Part shown: one piece after another, positions 7,983-40,900 of the stretch
Layout of the letters: the number at the start of each line of letters is the position of its first letter
Numbering within the stretch: position 1 is the first letter of the stretch
NCBI RefSeq assembly: GCF_031769215.1
Contig: NW_026782699.1
Span: forward strand, 124,001-188,000
Direction of reading: 5' to 3'
Source: Ylistrum balloti
Taxonomy: Eukaryota
Length of the DNA: 64,000 nucleotides
Made by a program: the position numbers and the translations under genes
The notes under the pieces: model-generated
Seen by the model: the letters and a program-made list of their open reading frames with translations, nothing else
What the model was told of the DNA's origin: nothing
The model's database searches: none

Positions 7983-8537
7983 ATATTCTAGGTAGGTACG
8001 ACACTGGCTGTATTGTCTAAGTGTATGCTATAACATATTCTAGGTAGGTACAACACTGGCTGTATTGTCTAAGTGTATGTTATGATATATTCTAGGTAGG
8101 TACGACACTGGCTGTATTGTCAAAGTGTATGCTATGACATATTCTAGGTAGGTACAACACTGGCTGTGTTTTCTATTCCCAGGTGTATGCTATGACATAT
8201 TCTAGGTAGGGATGACACTGACTGTATTGTCTAAGTGTATGTTATGACATATTCTAGGTAGGTACGACACTGGCTGTATTGTCTAAGTGTATGTTATGAT
8301 ATATTCTAGGTAGGTACGACACTGGCTGTATTGTCAAAGTGTATGCTATGACATATTCTAGGTAGGTACAACACTGGCTGTGTTTTCTATTCCCAGGTGT
8401 ATGCTATGATATATTCTAGGTAGGTACAACACTGGCAGTATTTTCTAAGTGTATGTTATGATATATTCTAGGTAGATACAACACTGGCTGTATTGTCTAC
8501 CCTATATCCTGGTATATGTTATGACATATTCTGGGTA
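7983..8537. repeat. 52-bp minisatellite, ~10 copies, overlapping the stop codon and 3'UTR of macro-PARP gene A
   Basis: Unit ATATTCTAGGTAGGTACGACACTGGCTGTATTGTCTAAGTGTATGCTATGAC, with starts at 7983 and 8035 (period 52). A few units are longer variants. Confidence 0.95.
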
Positions 8538-11500
8538 GCTCTGATGCTGGCTGTACAATACAAATTCCCGAAACAGCCAGGTGCCATCCCCCAGCACACT
8601 GTCACAGCGTTCCAGGTCACTATGGCTGCAGGTATCACTGTTGCAGTTTACTATAAAACATGGTGGCCTCTTCAGAGTGTTTGCAGTCTGAGACAACAGA
8701 CATATTCGGCCCAGACAAACTCTTGTTAACAACATGGTCTTCTCATCCTGGTTTCTGTTACCTTTAGCATCTAAAATGACAACAAGCTTACAGTTAGTGT
8801 TGCATGCAACACATGTCCCCTGTCGTAAATTACTGTATTTATCAGCAAATAAGCCCATGTCTGCTAATAAGCCCACCAATGTTCTGTTGTAAAGCAAATG
8901 GCAGCAAATGCTACTTAACTGTTTGCAAGAAGCTAACCCTTTACTATGGATACGAGTTTGAATGTTGGCCCCATGATCTAATTGCAGTATAAATACATTA
9001 TTTTTTAAAGTAATGCAGAACTTGTTCTGTACCAGAAGTGTCTTGTTTTATTATTTATAAGCTTCCAGTGTATCAAGTTTCAACCAAATCCATCAATCCG
9101 TTCTCAAATTATTGTCTGAAAACTAAATTGTGACAAGATTCTATTTTTAGTAACAGTGACCTTTGTAGTTGATCTTTTGACCCCAAACAAAATCCCACAC
9201 TATATTGCCTTATAAACTACCATTGTATGGAGTTACATCCAAATCCATTAATCCATTCTCAAGTTATTGTTTGGAAACTAAAATGTGACAACAATTTCTA
9301 TTTTTAGTAACAGTGACCTTTGTAGTTGATCTTTTGACCCCAAACAAAATCTCACACTATATTGCCCTATAAACTACCATTGTATGAAGTTTGATCCAAA
9401 TCCATCGATTTGTTCTCAAGTTATCGTCTGGAAACCAACATCCGGACAGGCAGACAGACGGACGGACAGACAGAGACAAACACTATAGTCCCCTCCGGTT
9501 TCAACGGCAGGGGACTAATAAACTTTCTGTAAGATGGATATCTAGACATGGTAGGTGTGGTCACAGATAAACACACAGTCACTACAGACATCTAGATATG
9601 GTAGGTATGGTCACAGATAAACACACAGTCATCTAGACATGGTAGGTATGGTCACAGATAAACACACAGTCACTACAGACATCTAGACATGTTAGGTATG
9701 GTCACAGATAAACACACAGTCACTACAGACATCTAGACATGGTAGGTATGGTCACAGATAAACACACAGTCACCTAGACATGGTAGGTATGGTCACAGAT
9801 AAACACACATTCATCTAGACATGGTAGGTATGGTCACAGATAAACACACATTCATCTAGACATGGTAGGTATGGTCACAGATAAACACACAGTCACTACA
9901 GTCATCTAGACATGGTAGGTATGGTCACAGATAAACACACAGTCACTACAGACATCTAGACATGGTAGGTATGGTCACAGATAAACACACAGTCACCTAG
10001 ACATGGTAGGTATGGTCACAGATAAACACACATTCATCTAGACATGGTAGGTATGGTCACAGATAAACACACATTCATCTAGACATGGTAGGTATGGTCA
10101 CAGATAAACACACAGTCACTACAGTCATCTAGACATGGTAGGTATGGTCACAGATAAACACACAGTCACTACAGACATCTAGACATGGTAGGTATGGTCA
10201 CAGATAAACACAAAGTCACTACAGACATCTAGACATGGTAGGTATGGTCACAGATAAACACAGTCACTACAGACATCTAGACATGGTAGGTATGGTCACA
10301 GATAAACACAGTCACTACAGACATCTAGACATGGTAGGTATGGTCACAGATAAACACACAGTCACTACAGACATCTAGACATGGTAGGTATGGTCACAGA
10401 TAAACACACAGTCATCCAGACATGTTAGGTATGGTCACAGATAAACACAGTCACTACAGACATCTAGACATGGTAGGTATGGTCACAGATAAACACACAG
10501 TCACTACAGACATCTAGACATGGTAGGTATGGTCACAGATAAACACACAGTCACCTAGACATGGTAGGTATGGTCACAGATAAACACACAGTCACTACGG
10601 ACATCTAGACACGGTAGGTATGGTCACAGATAAACACACAGACATCTAGACATGGTAGGTATGGTCACAGATAAACACACAGTCACAACAGACATCTAGA
10701 CAAGGTAGGTATGGTAAAAGAGAAACACACAGTCACTACAGACATCTAGACATGGTAGGTATGGTCACAGATAAACACACAGACATCTAGACATGGTAGG
10801 TATGGTCACAGATAAACACACAGTCACTACAGACATCTAGACATGGTAGGTATGGTCACAGATAAACACACAGACATCTAGACATGGTAGGTATGGTCAC
10901 AGATGAACACACAGTCACTACAGACATCTAGACATGGTAGGTATGGTCACAGATAAACACACAGTCACTATAGACATCTAGACACGGTAGGTATGGTCAC
11001 AGATAAACACACAGACATCTAGACATGGTAGGTATGGTCACAGATAAACACACAGTCACTACAGACATCTAGACATGGTAGGTATGGTCACAGATAAACA
11101 CACAGACATCTAGACATGGTAGGTATGGTCACAGATAAACACACAGACATCTAGACATGGTAGGTATGGTCACAGATAAACACACAGTCACTACAGACAT
11201 CTAGACACGGTAGGTATGGTCACAGATAAACACACAGACATCTAGACATGGTAGGTATGGTCACAGATAAACACACAGTCACTACAGACATCTAGACATG
11301 GTAGGTATGGTCACAGATAAACACACAGTCACTACAAACATCTAGACATGGTAGGTATGGTCACAGATAAACACACAGTCACTACAGACATCTAGAGTTA
11401 AAGCAATCAAGTAATTGACCTTACCAGCATATTGGTCGGCCTTTGTGGAACTCTCTGCCAGATACATTCCTTGACCAAACATGGCTTTCTCTCCAGACAT

Positions 11501-24000: not shown

Positions 24001-26894
24001 TAATGAACATTATTTGTTCCATGGAACAAAGGAAAACATCATCGAGAAAGTGTTGTCACAGGGACTAGATAATCGGATGGCAGGAGATAATGCTATGTTT
24101 GGTGCAGGTGTATATGCTGCTGAGAGCTCCACAAAAGCTGACCAATATACCGGTGGGTATAAGAGTACTTTAAAAAAAATCATTATTTTCCTAAATTTAC
24201 ATAAATGTCCTACCTGAGGTGAATTTAGTAAATAATGGCAAGAAAAAAAAGAAAGCGTGGTAAACAAAAATTGCATAATTCTCAAAAACCAGCTGGGCCC
24301 GTATTCATGAAACCATTCTCATGGTCAAGCATAGATTTTGTGCTAAAGCAAACTTTTTCATAATTCACCTAAATAATATAAAATAATACAAATGTCAAAT
24401 ATAAACATTGAATATAACTTTGGCTTGAAGTCCTTTAAAAAAATTTTTTTTTAATTTTTGGCAAAATCAGCCTTATTTATTAATTTTTAAGCTAAACAAG
24501 ACATAAGGCTTCAGAACAAACTTCATGCTTGAGCATGAGACCAGTTTCATGAATACGGGCCCAGGTTTGTATTCCTTTCAGGCCAGATTTCTTCAATATA
24601 TCATGGAATATTATCTATATTTCAACTTATTAAGGCCCCTAACATCACCAAGGAGTCCTGAGACAAAACTGCTGTAAGATGACATTTGATATATTTGCTT
24701 GTACTCTATCAATTTAGAACAGACAAGGAGGTATTCCTTTTGATTAAGCTGTCAATGTATCCAGGCTTATACAGTTTATGAAATAAAGGTTTTTCTTTCT
24801 CATAGTCTATCTGTTAAAAGATGTACAGATTTTTTGCAAATTTGCAAGTTAGGATTGGGTTTTTTTTAAATCTATATCTGGGTACCTGATATTTCTGGCC
24901 TAAGCCTGTGCAGGTAATAAGTCCTTAATCCACTGTTATAATAAATGCTTTACTGTTATCATTACCCCAGCAATAAGCCCACGGTTGTACTTAGTCGGAG
25001 GTTAGGTGTTAATTCCTCGAGTTATTGCTGAAAATATATACCTTGGTAGTAATAGTGGTACAGTATATGAATATAAATTGTGTCGTACAACAAAGATTTA
25101 TCTCTATACTGTATCTTTTGGATTCATAGTTTTACCTTCACCTCACACCTAATTTATTGAATCTGTTGTAATAGCAGTAATGATTCTAGGCTTGATCTAC
25201 ATGCATACATTTCATACATGATTGATGAATACTGATTTTGCCTTTTGTCCACCTGGCTATAAAAATTTTCAAGATTTGTTAACTCAATATAACTATAAAA
25301 CATTGAACAATTTCTTGGATGATAAGATGTCAAACTGCCTACTAAAATTTCCAATATCATCATGATTATCGTTATGTTTCATTTTTGTTTCTAAGGCCAC
25401 CATCATCTGATGGTTGGATGATCAAACTGCCCTTGGTCTGGTGTCCCTTCTAGTTGTGCATTAATTGTCCCATATTAGGACTCATCTGAGTAACAAAATG
25501 GCTGACAGCTGCAGGCAGCCTTCTTGGATTTTGACAGTAATAGTTTGTTATCTCTGTTTCTTGAAAAGTACTGGATGGATCAATCTCAAATTCCATGCGT
25601 AGGTTCCTCTTGGTCTCTCGTTTTGCATTGTCTGTTTTTTAGACTGATCTGGAAGATAAAATGGCCAACAGGCAGCCATCTTTGATTTGATAGTAATAGA
25701 TTGATATCACTATTTCTTTAGAAATATTGGATCTTTCTAAAATTATAATGTCGCTTTGCTTTAGTCTTTAGTTGTGTTTTTTATTTTTGGACTGATCAGA
25801 AAGACAAAGTGCTGAAAGGCAACTATCTTGGATTTGACAATTAACGATTACCGTCGCTATTTTCTCAACAGGGATTTTGAAATTGAATTTTAATAAAATG
25901 CAGTGTAATCAAAAGTTGTTTAATGATAAATGAAGTTTGAATATTTAGATGAATATATAGTTGAGAGTAGAGTTGATGATGATGAAGTCCAGTCCTTGTT
26001 CGAAGTAATTTTATCTATTGATACATGTATCTATAAACAATATATAGTATGTACACATTATATACAATAGCCATGCCTTTATTATATCAGAGTTCAGGTA
26101 TAGAGTTGTATAATCTCAGGCAAAGCCATAGAGAGCGTTCATCCCACCAGTGGCCTCTGTCCTGTTTGCTCGCCTTGCTTCTCATCTAGCAGACCAAGAG
26201 AGGTCTTTTTATACAAAATATTTGATACATGGGTAAAATGTGGCTTGTAAAAATCTGGTTGTAAGATGATGCCCTTGTGGCTTTTTGAGTGATCTTACAT
26301 GACCAATGATATGTACTTTGACAGTATGACCAGACATTGCTGCAGGCATTTGAGAGTTAGCCGAATGACCGTGAAAATTTCAAAAAAGATTTCAACTTAT
26401 TTATAGTTCATAAGAGCAAGCTTTTAAAGAACAAACCAATGTTTGGTGCCAAGATTCTTCTGGAATCTCCTTTTCATTTTGAAAATCATCTCATCTTTGA
26501 TAAACATTAAAAAAAACACTGGCACTCATTATGGAACAGCTTTCTATTTACCTATGTGGTCAATTGTATTGTGTTGTTTGAAATATATAATGGTATATTT
26601 AAATATATGAACTGAAACCTTTTCCTATGTATCTTTAAAGATTACAAAGACAGAAGGACATCATCTCCAAAGAAAATGTTTCTGGTGAAAATGTGCCTAG
26701 GGGAGGTACATGTATCCAACACAGCTTCCAAGTACAGGCGACCTCCATGTAAAAAGTGTGTTAAAGACGACTGCGCACACAAACATTTCTACGACAGTGT
26801 AGTAGGAGATGGAAAATGGATTTTTCGGGAATTTGTTCTGTATGATCCACGCCAAAGTTACCCAGAATTCATGATCACATATGTCAGAAAATGA
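18068..26894 (+). CDS. Macro-PARP gene B: two macrodomains + tankyrase-like (H-Y-E) ADP-ribosyltransferase domain, ~745 aa
   Basis: Ten coding exons: 18068-18092, 18842-18927, 19408-19644, 20035-20256, 21227-21278, 21778(or 21799)-21890, 22336-22569, 22941-23165(or 23174 with a GC donor), 23357-24152, 26641-26894. Macro motifs: ADVIVTNSA..SMVFPALGTG and ADVLVNLTN..SIAFPCFGSG. PARP motifs: NEHYLFHGT, MFGAGVYAAESSTKADQY, FREFVLYD..QSYPEFMITY. Confidence 0.92.
21315..21610. repeat. Degenerate tandem repeat, ~6 copies, unit ~45-60 bp
   Basis: Recurrent AGAGGTCACCT..A.ATGACCTT core in intron 5 of gene B. Confidence 0.75.
24293..24564. mobile_element. MITE (272 bp) with a perfect 21-bp terminal inverted repeat
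   Basis: CTGGGCCCGTATTCATGAAAC (24293-24313) and GTTTCATGAATACGGGCCCAG (24544-24564). The imperfect inverted match extends to ~40 bp and the interior is AT-rich. No clear TSD, so the superfamily is unassigned. Confidence 0.85.
25390..25870. mobile_element. Degenerate non-autonomous repeat with tandem cores (same family as 36700-37270)
   Basis: Repeated AAAATGGC..ACAGGCAGCCATCTTGGATTTTGAC..TTTGTTATC cores. Boundaries approximate. Confidence 0.6.
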
Positions 26895-37900: not shown

Positions 37901-40900
37901 TATATTGTACATGTATGACATTAGCAAATGATTATTTGGTGCATCTTTTGTTCAGTCTTGTGGATTGGTGGGTGTTAGACATTGCAGGTTAACTTTTAGT
38001 CCCTGTGGTTTGCCTTAACCTGCATGGCACATTTTAATTCATTCGCATAGTGATACAGTTCAGAATAAATTTTCAGACATACAAAATTAATTGAATTATT
38101 GGACTGGTGCCCCTCCCCAGTTTGATTCTGACATTTCTTTCAATCAGTTTTGATTCTCCTCGGTTTTCAAAATTTAGGCTCTTACCATCACTGACAAGTT
38201 CTAGAAGGACAAGACAGCTGTATGATGCAGTTTAATTCCATGTTTATTTATTCCTGTATCTAATTGTATAAGGTGCTTTTCACTTGTGTGTTATTTGTAC
38301 AATCTTAGCAACATACAAAACACTGACCATCTTTAAGCATATTTCATATATTTCAATTTATAGTACATATAAAAGGATACAGACAATGCTAGCTGGACCT
38401 GTCTGTCATGTTCTATTTACCTGGCAGATTCCTGTATCCAGGATTACACAAACTAGACATGGGAGGTGTGGGGATAGTATGTACTACTGGTACTGTAGCT
38501 GACGAACCCTACACCACAGAGAACCTGACTCGTCTTCGCCGGGGATACAAGATGTTATCAGAACCTTCCCTTCTCACCTGTATCAACTTCAATGATCCAT
38601 TGGTGAGTTTCAATGATATTCTGGTACAATGATAACACTAATTACAGCACTGAGACAATACAATAAAGCAAAAACATTACTATCTAAAGACGTGCTATCC
38701 TTAAAATTATATCTAGGTTCTTTGATTTTACTGTTGTATTTGAAAAAGATAATATATAAACATTTGTATCTGTCTAATTTTCTTGCTTTGAAGGAGCTGG
38801 ATATAATAGCCAATGGCATTGAATGGCAGGCAACTCTACCCATTACAACTATTGGAAAGCTAGATGCCATTGTGTTTTGGTTTGACCTTCACCTTGACGA
38901 TGAGATCTCCATAACAACTAACCCATCAATGGAGACCTGTTGGGAACAGGCGGTATTTCCTGTACTGCCCTCTCATTTTCATCAAAGCTGCTGTGGGATG
39001 CTTCATGGTAGATATTATTAATTGTCTAACTATTTGTAAAACATTTGATGTCTATATACGTTCCTTCATTTGAGTATAAAAATATGTAAAATTAAAGACT
39101 TTTGACAATTTCTGTCATTTGTAAATTTATTTTTGAAAGGTGAAATGAAATTCAAATTTCTGATAATGAATAATTTTCTAGGTTTTAATTTCTAAACATT
39201 TTATGATTTAAACCATCTTTTATAAATTAATTCAGTCAATTGTTATTAATATATTTGTAGTTCAAACTCCCAAAGGGCATTCTTGTTTTTAATATATTTC
39301 AGACACACAACATGGGTTTATAATCAGGGATGGAGACTCACTTCATGTAAAGTTCAGTCTAGGAGAAGATTGTTTATGGTTGGTTTCCTGTCACTGCTGC
39401 CATGACAGCGATGATTCAGCACCCTACATGCCTCTGGCAGATTTTATCTGTCCACCACAGGTCACTGAACAATATCTATTGGAAAGGACAGAAATAGACA
39501 AACTCAACAATCTCTATTACAATAAAATGTTCTGTCAGGCCATAGATAAACATTTATCACAGTTAGATTGTGCTGATAGCCTAAGAATCCTTGACTTCTC
39601 TGGAGGGTTATCTCCCCTTTGTTTACAAATGTTAAAGGATAGTGATCATCATTGCGTTGTTATAGCAAGGGAGGGACTACATGATGTCATATGGAAGTTG
39701 ATGTCTGTGAATGATATCGACCGTGATAGACTGCAGCTTGTGGAACCTTCGAACCTGTCAGAGGTCGAGGGAGATTGTCAGCTAATATTGTGTGATATCA
39801 TAGAACAGTGTGGCATCCTCAAACAGCAAGTCCTGGAGGACATCGCACTTCTCAGGTAAGTCAAGTTGGTTAACCTCAAGGGTAGGTAATACTAGTACGT
39901 CTTTAGTAGGTTATGTTAATACATATCACAGGTAGGTCAAGGTAATACACTCTGTGTTACACACCAAAGGTTCGTCAAGCATGTAAACATCAAATGTCAA
40001 GTATGTATAGTGATGGGAATCGGAACAGAAATTTACAATTGATTATCTGGAGGAGTACTATAAACGATTAATCGATCAATCGAAATCTTCCAGGATATTG
40101 GTACAGCTCATTATCATCCGCCATATTGACAACATGCTCTTTCGTACTTATGTTTAAAAGTTGAAATCTAAAGTTTTCTTGATTTATGAATATACAATGT
40201 ACTTTCCTTTTCTAAAAACAAATGAAATCCAAATTTTGATTTACTAGTGTAGATTTGTGTCAGTTTTTTTTATTATAAATACTGAATGAAAACTGCGAAA
40301 CATATGCCAAATACTGGTTACTTCTAGTACTGATACACTAGGCTCGATACAATACGTTGGTTTGGTACATCCCCATCCTGGACCAGGAGGTTATTAACCT
40401 TTTTTTTTTTTTTTGATTAATCGAGCTTACAAAAACTTAAGTCGAGCGCTTGATTTTTGGTTGTAGTCGAGCAATTTTTGACTTTTTTCGACTATCGGAA
40501 CACCACTAAGTATATACACATCAAAGGTCAACCTAGTATATGTTTGAGGTGAGGCTTGGACACATGTAAGTTCAAGCTTTTACATAGGTCAAGCCAGTAC
40601 ACATCACAGTAAGGTCAAGTCAGTGCACATCATAGGAAGGTCAAGCCAGTACACATCACAGTACACATCACAGTAAGGTCAAGTCAGTACACATATCAGA
40701 TAGGTCAAGCCAGTACACATCACAGTAAGGTCAAGTCAGTGCACATCACAGGAAGGTCAAGCCAGTACACATCACAGTAAGGTCAAGTCAGTACACATAT
40801 CAGATAGGTCAAGGCAGTACACATCACAGTAAGGTCAAGTCAGTGCACATCACAGGAAGGTCAAGCCAGTACACATCACAGTAAGGTCAAGTCAGTACAC

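Follow-up and report, generated by a model that had tools for sequence, protein, structure and literature searches.

Are the scallop genes that databases file as PARP14-like true PARP14 orthologues, or do they join PARP14-type macrodomains to a catalytic domain of another origin? The question is raised by a locus of Ylistrum balloti (RefSeq assembly GCF_031769215.1, contig NW_026782699.1, positions 124,001 to 188,000 of the forward strand), a stretch of 64,000 nucleotides with ~34% G+C and zero N runs, which we call the window. Two genes lie in it head to head, gene A on the minus strand (8502..18003) and gene B on the plus strand (18068..26894), and each encodes two macrodomains followed by a PARP-type ADP-ribosyltransferase (ART) domain. 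According to the textbook view, macrodomain-PARPs are mono-ADP-ribosyltransferases or dead enzymes, because the three human ones lack the catalytic Glu. The whole result presented here is comparative. In our estimate (probability of roughly 0.75), A and B are best explained as divergent paralogous macro-PARPs which combine reader macrodomains with their own His-Tyr-Glu (H-Y-E) writer of a separate lineage.

The catalytic domains of both genes keep the H-Y-E triad

A reading of the locus from its sequence alone (hereafter, the sequence-only reading) had quoted catalytic motifs for both proteins, and all of them are present: FFHGT, MFGQGMYLAESSTKADQY and LFREFVLY...QSYPEYVITY in gene A, and LFHGT, MFGAGVYAAESSTKADQY and IFREFVLY...QSYPEFMITY in gene B. 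The tankyrase motifs set beside them likewise match the tankyrase-2 chains in the HMMER output. When 72 complete catalytic domains from the family are aligned, His occurs in 71/72, while Tyr and Glu (72/72 each) and the Lys of SSTK are invariant. By residue-to-genome mapping, these residues of gene A are His616 (11557-11555), Tyr647 (11464-11462), Lys654 (11443-11441) and Glu728 (8565..8567), all on the minus strand; those of gene B are His616 (24020-24022), Tyr647 (24113-24115), Lys654 (24134-24136) and Glu723 (26829..26831), on the plus strand.

It had been claimed that the Glu of FREF occupies the catalytic position. By alignment it is at the position of the tankyrase catalytic Glu, because it is matched with the Glu of tankyrase-2 and the Ile of PARP12. 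In HMMER, the family consensus frEfvvY...YPEYlitY runs without gaps along tankyrase-2 laEYVIY...YPEYLITY, Glu on Glu, and the Glu of rEFVLY in gene B stands opposite the Ile of PARP12 siFVIF. Along the donor-site block, FHGT...MFGxGxYxAESSTKADQY, the alignment to tankyrase-2 is interrupted by no more than a small gap around FHG(T/S).

Immediately ahead of the Glu strand, in the acceptor-loop region, the family carries an insert of the form CxxCx4Cx[H/D/C]. Its three Cys columns hold Cys in 69, 68 and 70 of 71 sequences, and 52/71 have H, D or C at the fourth position. In gene B the cluster reads C696-x2-C699-x4-C704-x-H706 (26748..26780, plus strand), and in gene A, where the first spacing is x4, C697-x4-C702-x4-C707-x-H709 (8622..8660, minus strand). 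In the alignments compared, neither the protist relatives nor PARP12 nor the PARP14-like domains have it. The Cys-rich knuckle is placed where it could shape the acceptor site.

Three family members from gastropod and unnamed sources, P0292, P0317 and P0288, have Tyr for the triad His, and P0292 (Bulinus) additionally has Gln for Glu; judging from these substitutions, they are possibly inactivated copies.

In trees, PARP14-like catalytic domains form a clade without the family

An exhaustive search with full-length gene B returned 10,949 proteins at E≤1e-3, of which 395 had E≤1e-30, and the top 150 matches form two sharply separate sets by their score against a family profile. Members of the first set score at least 200 bits and nearly all carry both H-Y-E and the Cys cluster (the exceptions are three Tyr-for-His and one Gln-for-Glu); every named member is from a bivalve or a gastropod. 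The second set consists of macro-PARPs of 1000-3100 amino acids, a quail PARP14-like protein being one example, which were matched through their macrodomains; their catalytic domains reach 15-74 bits and their triads are mostly H-Y-M/L/I/V. The search thereby supplied PARP14-like references, but no tankyrase. A word search with the profile also brought up ~60 more proteins, which score 100-170 bits, have H-Y-E in every case and lack the Cys cluster. Their named sources are the dinoflagellates Gymnodinium smaydae and Durinskia dybowskii as well as Nutomonas longa, in addition to many marine metatranscriptome proteins, and some of them carry WW, WWE, MORN or EF-hand domains. The family and this protist group were joined by hhalign with probability 100 (E 4e-63, 29% identity, 246 columns). 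A viral origin was considered and rejected, since viral contigs scanned with the protist-group profile yielded zero relatives.

Two trees were calculated, a quick one of 152 rows and a careful one of 64 rows (LG+C20+F+G4), containing 67 and 24 PARP14-like rows, respectively. Both trees show four clean groups, which the careful tree recovers as clades: the family (support 99/96), the protist group (97/90), the PARP14-like domains (99/94) and the fish PARP12 domains (100/99). Its topology sets the family together with the protist H-Y-E domains against PARP12 together with the PARP14-like domains, with a central branch between them that is 1.35 substitutions per site long (100/99). In the quick tree, too, the PARP14-like clade of 67 rows excludes the family (Shimodaira-Hasegawa-like approximate likelihood ratio test, SH-aLRT, 93). 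Nesting within PARP14/15 was the outcome which the sequence-only reading had set beforehand as contrary to its proposal; the domain is not nested there, because the PARP14-like clade of the careful tree excludes the family.

The trees thus suggest that the catalytic domain is of a lineage other than those of PARP14/15 and PARP12, and one that protists have as well. Among human enzymes, tankyrase and PARP12 are at a similar distance from it, judging by scores against solved structures. The proposal of a distinct lineage held as far as separation from PARP14-like domains is concerned; it is tempered by an otherwise PARP14-like architecture and by the Glu found in clade-3-type PARP14-like proteins of molluscs. 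The domain has much closer H-Y-E relatives in protists.

The domain is tankyrase-like only in part

The catalytic region of gene B (residues 450-743) was modelled by AlphaFold2 from a 71-sequence alignment, with a mean predicted local distance difference test (pLDDT) of 96.0 and a predicted template modelling score (pTM) of 0.93. Its Pfam PARP match and the Z-scores of 21-22 reached by the model predict a PARP catalytic fold with an NAD+-binding His and Tyr. Foldseek with this model placed tankyrase-1/2 on top, with PARP12 among them. In VIA-align, the tankyrases gave Z 21-22.4 at a root mean square deviation (rmsd) of 1.7-2.2 Å over ~190 residues (25-27% identity), and PARP15 gave Z 21.0-21.3 at 2.6-2.8 Å over ~193 residues (22-23% identity). 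The comparison with solved PARPs therefore favoured tankyrase by the lowest rmsd (1.8 Å), but the Z-scores of tankyrase and PARP15 are, as far as the model goes, tied.

Sequence scores gave a similar picture. The gene B domain as a single sequence scored 41.4 bits with PARP12, 41.3 with tankyrase-2, 40.8 with tankyrase-1, 35.9 with PARP15 and 28.8 with PARP14, PARP1 not being among the matches listed. The family profile gave 93.9 bits with tankyrase-2, 86.7 with tankyrase-1, 87.3 with PARP12, 75 with PARP15, 68 with PARP14 and 50 with PARP1. The protist-group profile ranked the solved structures as the family profile did (tankyrase-2 93.5, tankyrase-1 87, PARP12 77, PARP15 69, PARP14 63). However, the tankyrase-2 score is made up of 19 bits for the N-terminal helical part and 75 for the core, and the core of PARP12 scores 87. 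The description of the domain as tankyrase-like can hence be kept, loosely, where the N-terminal insert and the block at the donor site are concerned, and not for the whole domain, because PARP12 is ahead over the core; the tie in Z-scores and the absence of the tankyrase zinc motif, ankyrin repeats and SAM domain also stand against it.

Both genes are intact and encode a pair of macrodomains plus one PARP domain

Genes A and B are intact, divergent and already in the public annotation, since every exon matches public Ylistrum balloti proteins at 100% identity: P0091 (748 amino acids) for gene A and P0075 (743 amino acids) for gene B. Both proteins bear the database name 'protein mono-ADP-ribosyltransferase PARP14-like [Ylistrum balloti]', in line with the expectation that relatives might exist under a PARP14-like label. 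The mollusc family was first located by a word search with one exon of the window, and P0091 and P0075 by a word search scoring the catalytic part of a 510-amino-acid relative. Exact spliced mapping of the two proteins confirmed a head-to-head pair at 8502-26894, these positions being the outermost nucleotides of both stop codons.

Gene A has 11 coding exons (18003-17914, 17042-16964, 16053-15950, 15677-15450, 15127-14906, 14608-14563, 14213-14131, 13593-13357, 13231-13007, 12088-11425 and 8770-8502, minus strand). Gene B has 10 (18068-18092, 18842-18927, 19408-19644, 20035-20256, 21227-21278, 21799-21890, 22336-22569, 22941-23174, 23357-24152 and 26641-26894, plus strand). All introns of gene A are GT-AG, as are those of gene B except for a single GC-AG intron (CAG|GCAAGT) after 23174, between the second macrodomain and the catalytic exon. 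The splice sites rest on identity to the public models, canonical sites and conservation. Six-frame open reading frames (ORFs) from 8.5 to 27 kb consist of macrodomain and PARP pieces on both strands; the ORF scan missed short upstream exons and one micro-exon per gene (18003-17914, 17042-16964 and 14608-14563 in gene A; 18068-18092 and 21227-21278 in gene B). An apparent frame break in an ORF-based exon model of gene A was dismissed, because the 46-nucleotide micro-exon 14608-14563 restores the frame.

In each protein, Pfam found two Macro domains (E 1.5e-37 and 1.1e-41) together with a PARP match above the gathering score (E 1.3e-15 and 1.4e-13). As had been proposed, no WWE, RRM, ankyrin or SAM domain was found in either full protein at E≤1, and the only other Pfam match at this threshold was a sub-threshold DUF3990 in gene A. 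With introns included, the gene A domains assigned by Pfam are, on the minus strand, macrodomain 1 (residues ~70-245, 14597..16015), macrodomain 2 (residues ~262-445, 12068..14199) and the ART domain (residues ~470-748, 8505..11995, with a 2654-bp intron inside), which is a member of the family alignment. In gene B, on the plus strand, macrodomain 1 (residues ~17-200, 18865..21256) and macrodomain 2 (residues ~215-390, 21819..23162) were placed by phmmer against the Protein Data Bank (PDB), and the ART domain (residues ~470-743, 23582..26891, with a 2488-bp intron inside) by the AlphaFold2 model.

The likeness to PARP14 macrodomains was computed on gene B, and both of its macrodomains are closest, by phmmer against the PDB, to human PARP14 macrodomain 2 (macrodomain 1: E 1.6e-25 with 5o2d and 2.4e-32 with 3vfq; macrodomain 2: E 8e-21 with 5o2d and 7.8e-35 with 3vfq, a two-domain chain). 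PARP14 macrodomain 2 is a mono-ADP-ribose reader. Loop 1 has a single Gly, as opposed to the Gly-Gly of PARP14 macrodomain 1 and MacroD enzymes, and loop 2 reads GTG, GSG or TTG, except for GTR in gene A macrodomain 2. Since loop 1 has this single Gly and loop 2 these motifs, we infer that the macrodomains are ADP-ribose readers and not MacroD-type erasers.

The family is broad in molluscs and under purifying selection

The two proteins are 36% identical and belong to different bivalve-wide subfamilies. Gene A groups with oyster and mussel proteins; the subfamily of gene B includes Pecten and Argopecten orthologues and pearl-oyster proteins, and there is at least one further scallop subfamily. 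A and B thus appear to be anciently diverged paralogues in a mollusc-expanded macrodomain-PARP family. The Pecten maximus orthologue of gene B has the same 10 coding exons, and the gene that lies upstream of it, on the other strand, matches gene A at 81-84%; therefore, the head-to-head pair is conserved among scallops. In Pecten maximus LR736843.1 (L001:1-4190), the gene A orthologue is annotated as a Macro-PARP-Macro-PARP protein of 1421 amino acids, which is either truly a double protein or the result of the annotation having fused two tandem genes.

Between gene B and its Pecten orthologue, the ratio of nonsynonymous to synonymous substitution rates (dN/dS) is 0.19 for the whole protein, 0.24 for the macrodomains, 0.30 for the linker and 0.09 for the catalytic domain, so that purifying selection on the latter is strong. 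Where sources are named, domains with both Glu and Cys cluster come from Bivalvia, Gastropoda and a single annelid (Lamellibrachia). In the Atlas, the protein falls into a cluster (Macro and PARP) of 155 members, and the 151 with a known phylum are all Mollusca; its next structural neighbour is a Perkinsozoa-labelled cluster. Both Atlas observations serve as leads only.

RRM_PARP14_3 and KH_PARP14 domains accompany the macrodomains in longer mollusc proteins that have this catalytic domain, so that the architecture outside that domain is PARP14-like. Molluscs also have clade-3-type PARP14-like proteins with Glu at the third triad position (...NPQE-YVIF...), as seen in Argopecten, Sinanodonta, Mactra, Mytilus and Dreissena; P0226, P0278, P0319, P0250 and P0289 (1130-3035 amino acids) are proteins of this kind. 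Among PARP14-like homologues, this position is L or M in vertebrates and Q in a hemichordate (P0215), and vertebrate-type sequences in the family-profile alignment have M, L, I or V. Retention of Glu as a unique property of this family was therefore overstated. As aligned, Glu-bearing macro-PARPs are common in molluscs, and because bivalve clade-3-type PARP14-like proteins keep Glu, its loss looks like a vertebrate-side change.

How the proteins may work, and which readings compete

From the constrained domain and its own catalytic Glu we infer an active enzyme. Genes A and B would be transcribed divergently from a putative shared promoter region. The enzyme would move ADP-ribose from nicotinamide adenine dinucleotide (NAD+) with its own Glu, and not by the substrate-assisted chemistry of vertebrate macro-PARPs. 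Its macrodomains may hold it at sites bearing ADP-ribose, letting marks spread locally, and the family-specific Cys-rich knuckle, probably zinc-binding, may shape the acceptor side.

What the writer would make is the question on which the competing readings differ. A mono-ADP-ribosyltransferase that keeps H-Y-E, and uses Glu for initiation or for a non-acidic acceptor (Ser, Tyr or nucleic-acid ends), has in our view about an even chance. It has a precedent in PARP3 and PARP4, which keep H-Y-E and yet are mono-transferases, so the caution that H-Y-E is not sufficient was well placed (PMC6486540). The C-terminal core, which scores slightly higher with the mono-transferase PARP12 than with tankyrase-2 (87 vs 75 bits), points the same way, as do the PARP14-like architecture and macrodomains; that Glu and the tankyrase/PARP1-type Lys are strictly conserved in molluscs and protists fits this reading no better than one in which chains are formed. 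Formation of oligo- or poly-ADP-ribose chains, as suggested in the sequence-only reading, with reader macrodomains binding the product and feeding forward, we propose tentatively, by analogy and at somewhat below even odds. It is favoured by the invariance of H-Y-E in the family, by the alignment of the donor-site block and the invariant SSTK Lys with tankyrase-2, and by tankyrase being the best-scoring solved relative; moreover, PARP1 Glu988 is needed for elongation (PMC6486540). However, the D-loop and acceptor loop also decide the outcome (PMC6486540), and the acceptor loop of this family has its own Cys insert. Chain formation is not readable from the sequence, given PARP3 and PARP4, and the PARP14 macrodomain which those of gene B resemble reads mono-ADP-ribose.

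The other two readings concern what the genes are. That they are ordinary PARP14/PARP15 orthologues, correctly labelled by the annotation, would agree with the database names, with macrodomains like PARP14 macrodomain 2 and with the RRM and KH domains of longer mollusc proteins. We consider it improbable: the catalytic domain lies outside the PARP14-like clade (99/94) and across the 1.35 branch, PARP14-like domains score 15-74 bits on the family profile against at least 200 for members, the third triad residue is Glu and not Leu or Met, and molluscs possess separate clade-3-type PARP14-like proteins besides. Pseudogenes or annotation artefacts came into question when two exons of the ORF-based gene A model could not be joined in frame. 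For the coding sequence this is refuted, and we give it next to no credence, as the micro-exon fixes the frame, the frames are intact, the exon structure is kept in Pecten and dN/dS is 0.19.

Several points weigh against our preferred explanation, that of reader macrodomains joined to an H-Y-E writer of separate lineage. Forcing the family and the PARP14-like domains together cost 41.8 log-likelihood units with a borderline p-value in the approximately unbiased test (p-AU 0.049), for a grouping named after the tree had been seen. The tree was built without tankyrase, PARP1-4, PARP10 and PARP16 references, so the placement within the superfamily is not fixed. Gene A macrodomain 2 may not bind ADP-ribose, because GTR replaces the GxG of binding macrodomains. 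Finally, among the sequencing runs searched, the locus was found in DNA-type runs only and in no RNA run, and the literature yielded no biochemical data on any family member.

Spacer, introns and neighbourhood

The annotated start codons are separated by a spacer of 64 bp (18004..18067, from the exon maps), the core of the putative shared divergent promoter region. The first coding exon of gene A (30 amino acids, MRRRPIHP...) is not conserved; it is probably 5' untranslated region (5'UTR) misread as coding, because orthologues begin at the equivalent of gene A Met31 (MS..., acidic and Ser-rich). Even with exon 1 as 5'UTR, the predicted transcription starts of A and B would be close together. 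In that case, the IRF-like elements pointed out in the sequence-only reading (17589-17777) lie inside the first intron of gene A.

A minisatellite at 9540-11396, ~40 copies of a 50-bp unit with 86% matches, fills most of the last intron of gene A and accounts for the odd composition at 10-12 kb; its end and the exon 10 donor site (11425) are ~29 bp apart. The same intron holds a tandem array at 9055-9435 (157 bp x 2.4), and another, at 21365-21613 (45 bp x 5.4), lies in the gene B intron between 21278 and 21799. A PRMT-type gene is probably present ~12 kb downstream of gene B, because an ORF on the plus strand (38629-39021) has a sub-threshold match to PRMT_C, the arginine methyltransferase oligomerisation subdomain (E 3.9e-05).

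Novelty and meaning

The genes themselves are already known; the H-Y-E property and the placement of the lineage are apparently undescribed. Glu was reported in one clade 3 protein only, from Tetrahymena (Citarelli et al. 2010, PMC2964712), and invertebrate PARP14-like proteins were described without comment on the triad (Perina et al. 2014; Delgado-Rodriguez et al. 2023). In the literature covered, which is incomplete, we found no published account of H-Y-E macro-PARPs or of where their catalytic domain belongs. Oyster 'PARP14', which may or may not be a member of this family, is listed among antiviral effectors (PMC12803857); an immune role is a guess made plausible by this listing and by the family expansion.

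Taken together, molluscs have a large, conserved family under purifying selection in which PARP14-type macrodomains and an H-Y-E catalytic domain from another lineage stand in one protein. This makes it a natural test case for a reader coupled to a Glu-dependent writer, and the catalytic lineage, common to dinoflagellates and other protists, may be an unnamed branch of the PARP superfamily. A bolder and rather unlikely conjecture is that molluscs keep macro-PARPs making oligo- or poly-ADP-ribose on an old eukaryotic H-Y-E lineage lost by vertebrates, with readers that bind the enzyme's own product so that the mark spreads from a seed. If true, this would be the ancestral mode of 'antiviral' macro-PARPs, from a time when PARP14/15/9 of vertebrates had not yet turned into mono-transferases or lost their activity.

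Comparison with known systems

With PARP14/15/9, the scallop proteins share macrodomains N-terminal to a C-terminal transferase, and those macrodomains are closest to PARP14 macrodomain 2; the RRM and KH domains of longer mollusc relatives add to the likeness with PARP14. In contrast, their catalytic domain is of another lineage, with Glu in place of Leu, Met or Thr. Unlike PARP14, they also have no macrodomain-1-type (hydrolase) domain and no WWE, and they are ~745 rather than ~1800 amino acids long. PARP12 is the top single-sequence PDB match for the full domain of gene B (E 1.2e-09), and the core aligns well with it from FHGT to the C-terminus, the RPP...YDS segment included. However, PARP12 is H-Y-I, has zinc fingers and WWE but no macrodomains, and lies across the long central branch.

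Tankyrase-1/2 share H-Y-E, a donor-site block that is nearly the same (FHG[ST], MFGxGxYxAExSxKxxQY), an additional helical insert that follows the first helices and the C-terminal YPEYxITY, and they have the best profile score among solved structures (94 bits) and the lowest rmsd (1.8 Å, ~190 residues, 26-27% identity). Their lead over PARP12 is 7 bits, and over the core it is reversed. Unlike tankyrases, proteins A and B are without ankyrin repeats and SAM (Pfam, E≤1), and the zinc-motif segment of tankyrase-2, GCPVHKDRSCYICH, faces a short Cys-free linker or gaps in the family. The tankyrase zinc motif (Cys/His/Cys/Cys) follows the donor-site helix, whereas the Cys cluster of the family is in another loop, before the Glu strand.

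A tankyrase-like ART domain of Naegleria fowleri (PMC9688111) is a precedent for a tankyrase-related domain without ankyrin repeats or SAM outside animals. It is reported to keep the tankyrase zinc motif and 37% identity to tankyrase-1 (Sowa et al. 2022, PMC9688111), while the family here has no such motif, a contrast taken from the published description. The protist H-Y-E domains, which have neither macrodomains nor the Cys cluster, are the closest relatives outside molluscs and annelids, and have in common with the scallop domain the PxYW start, the TW...RD insert and the H-Y-E triad.

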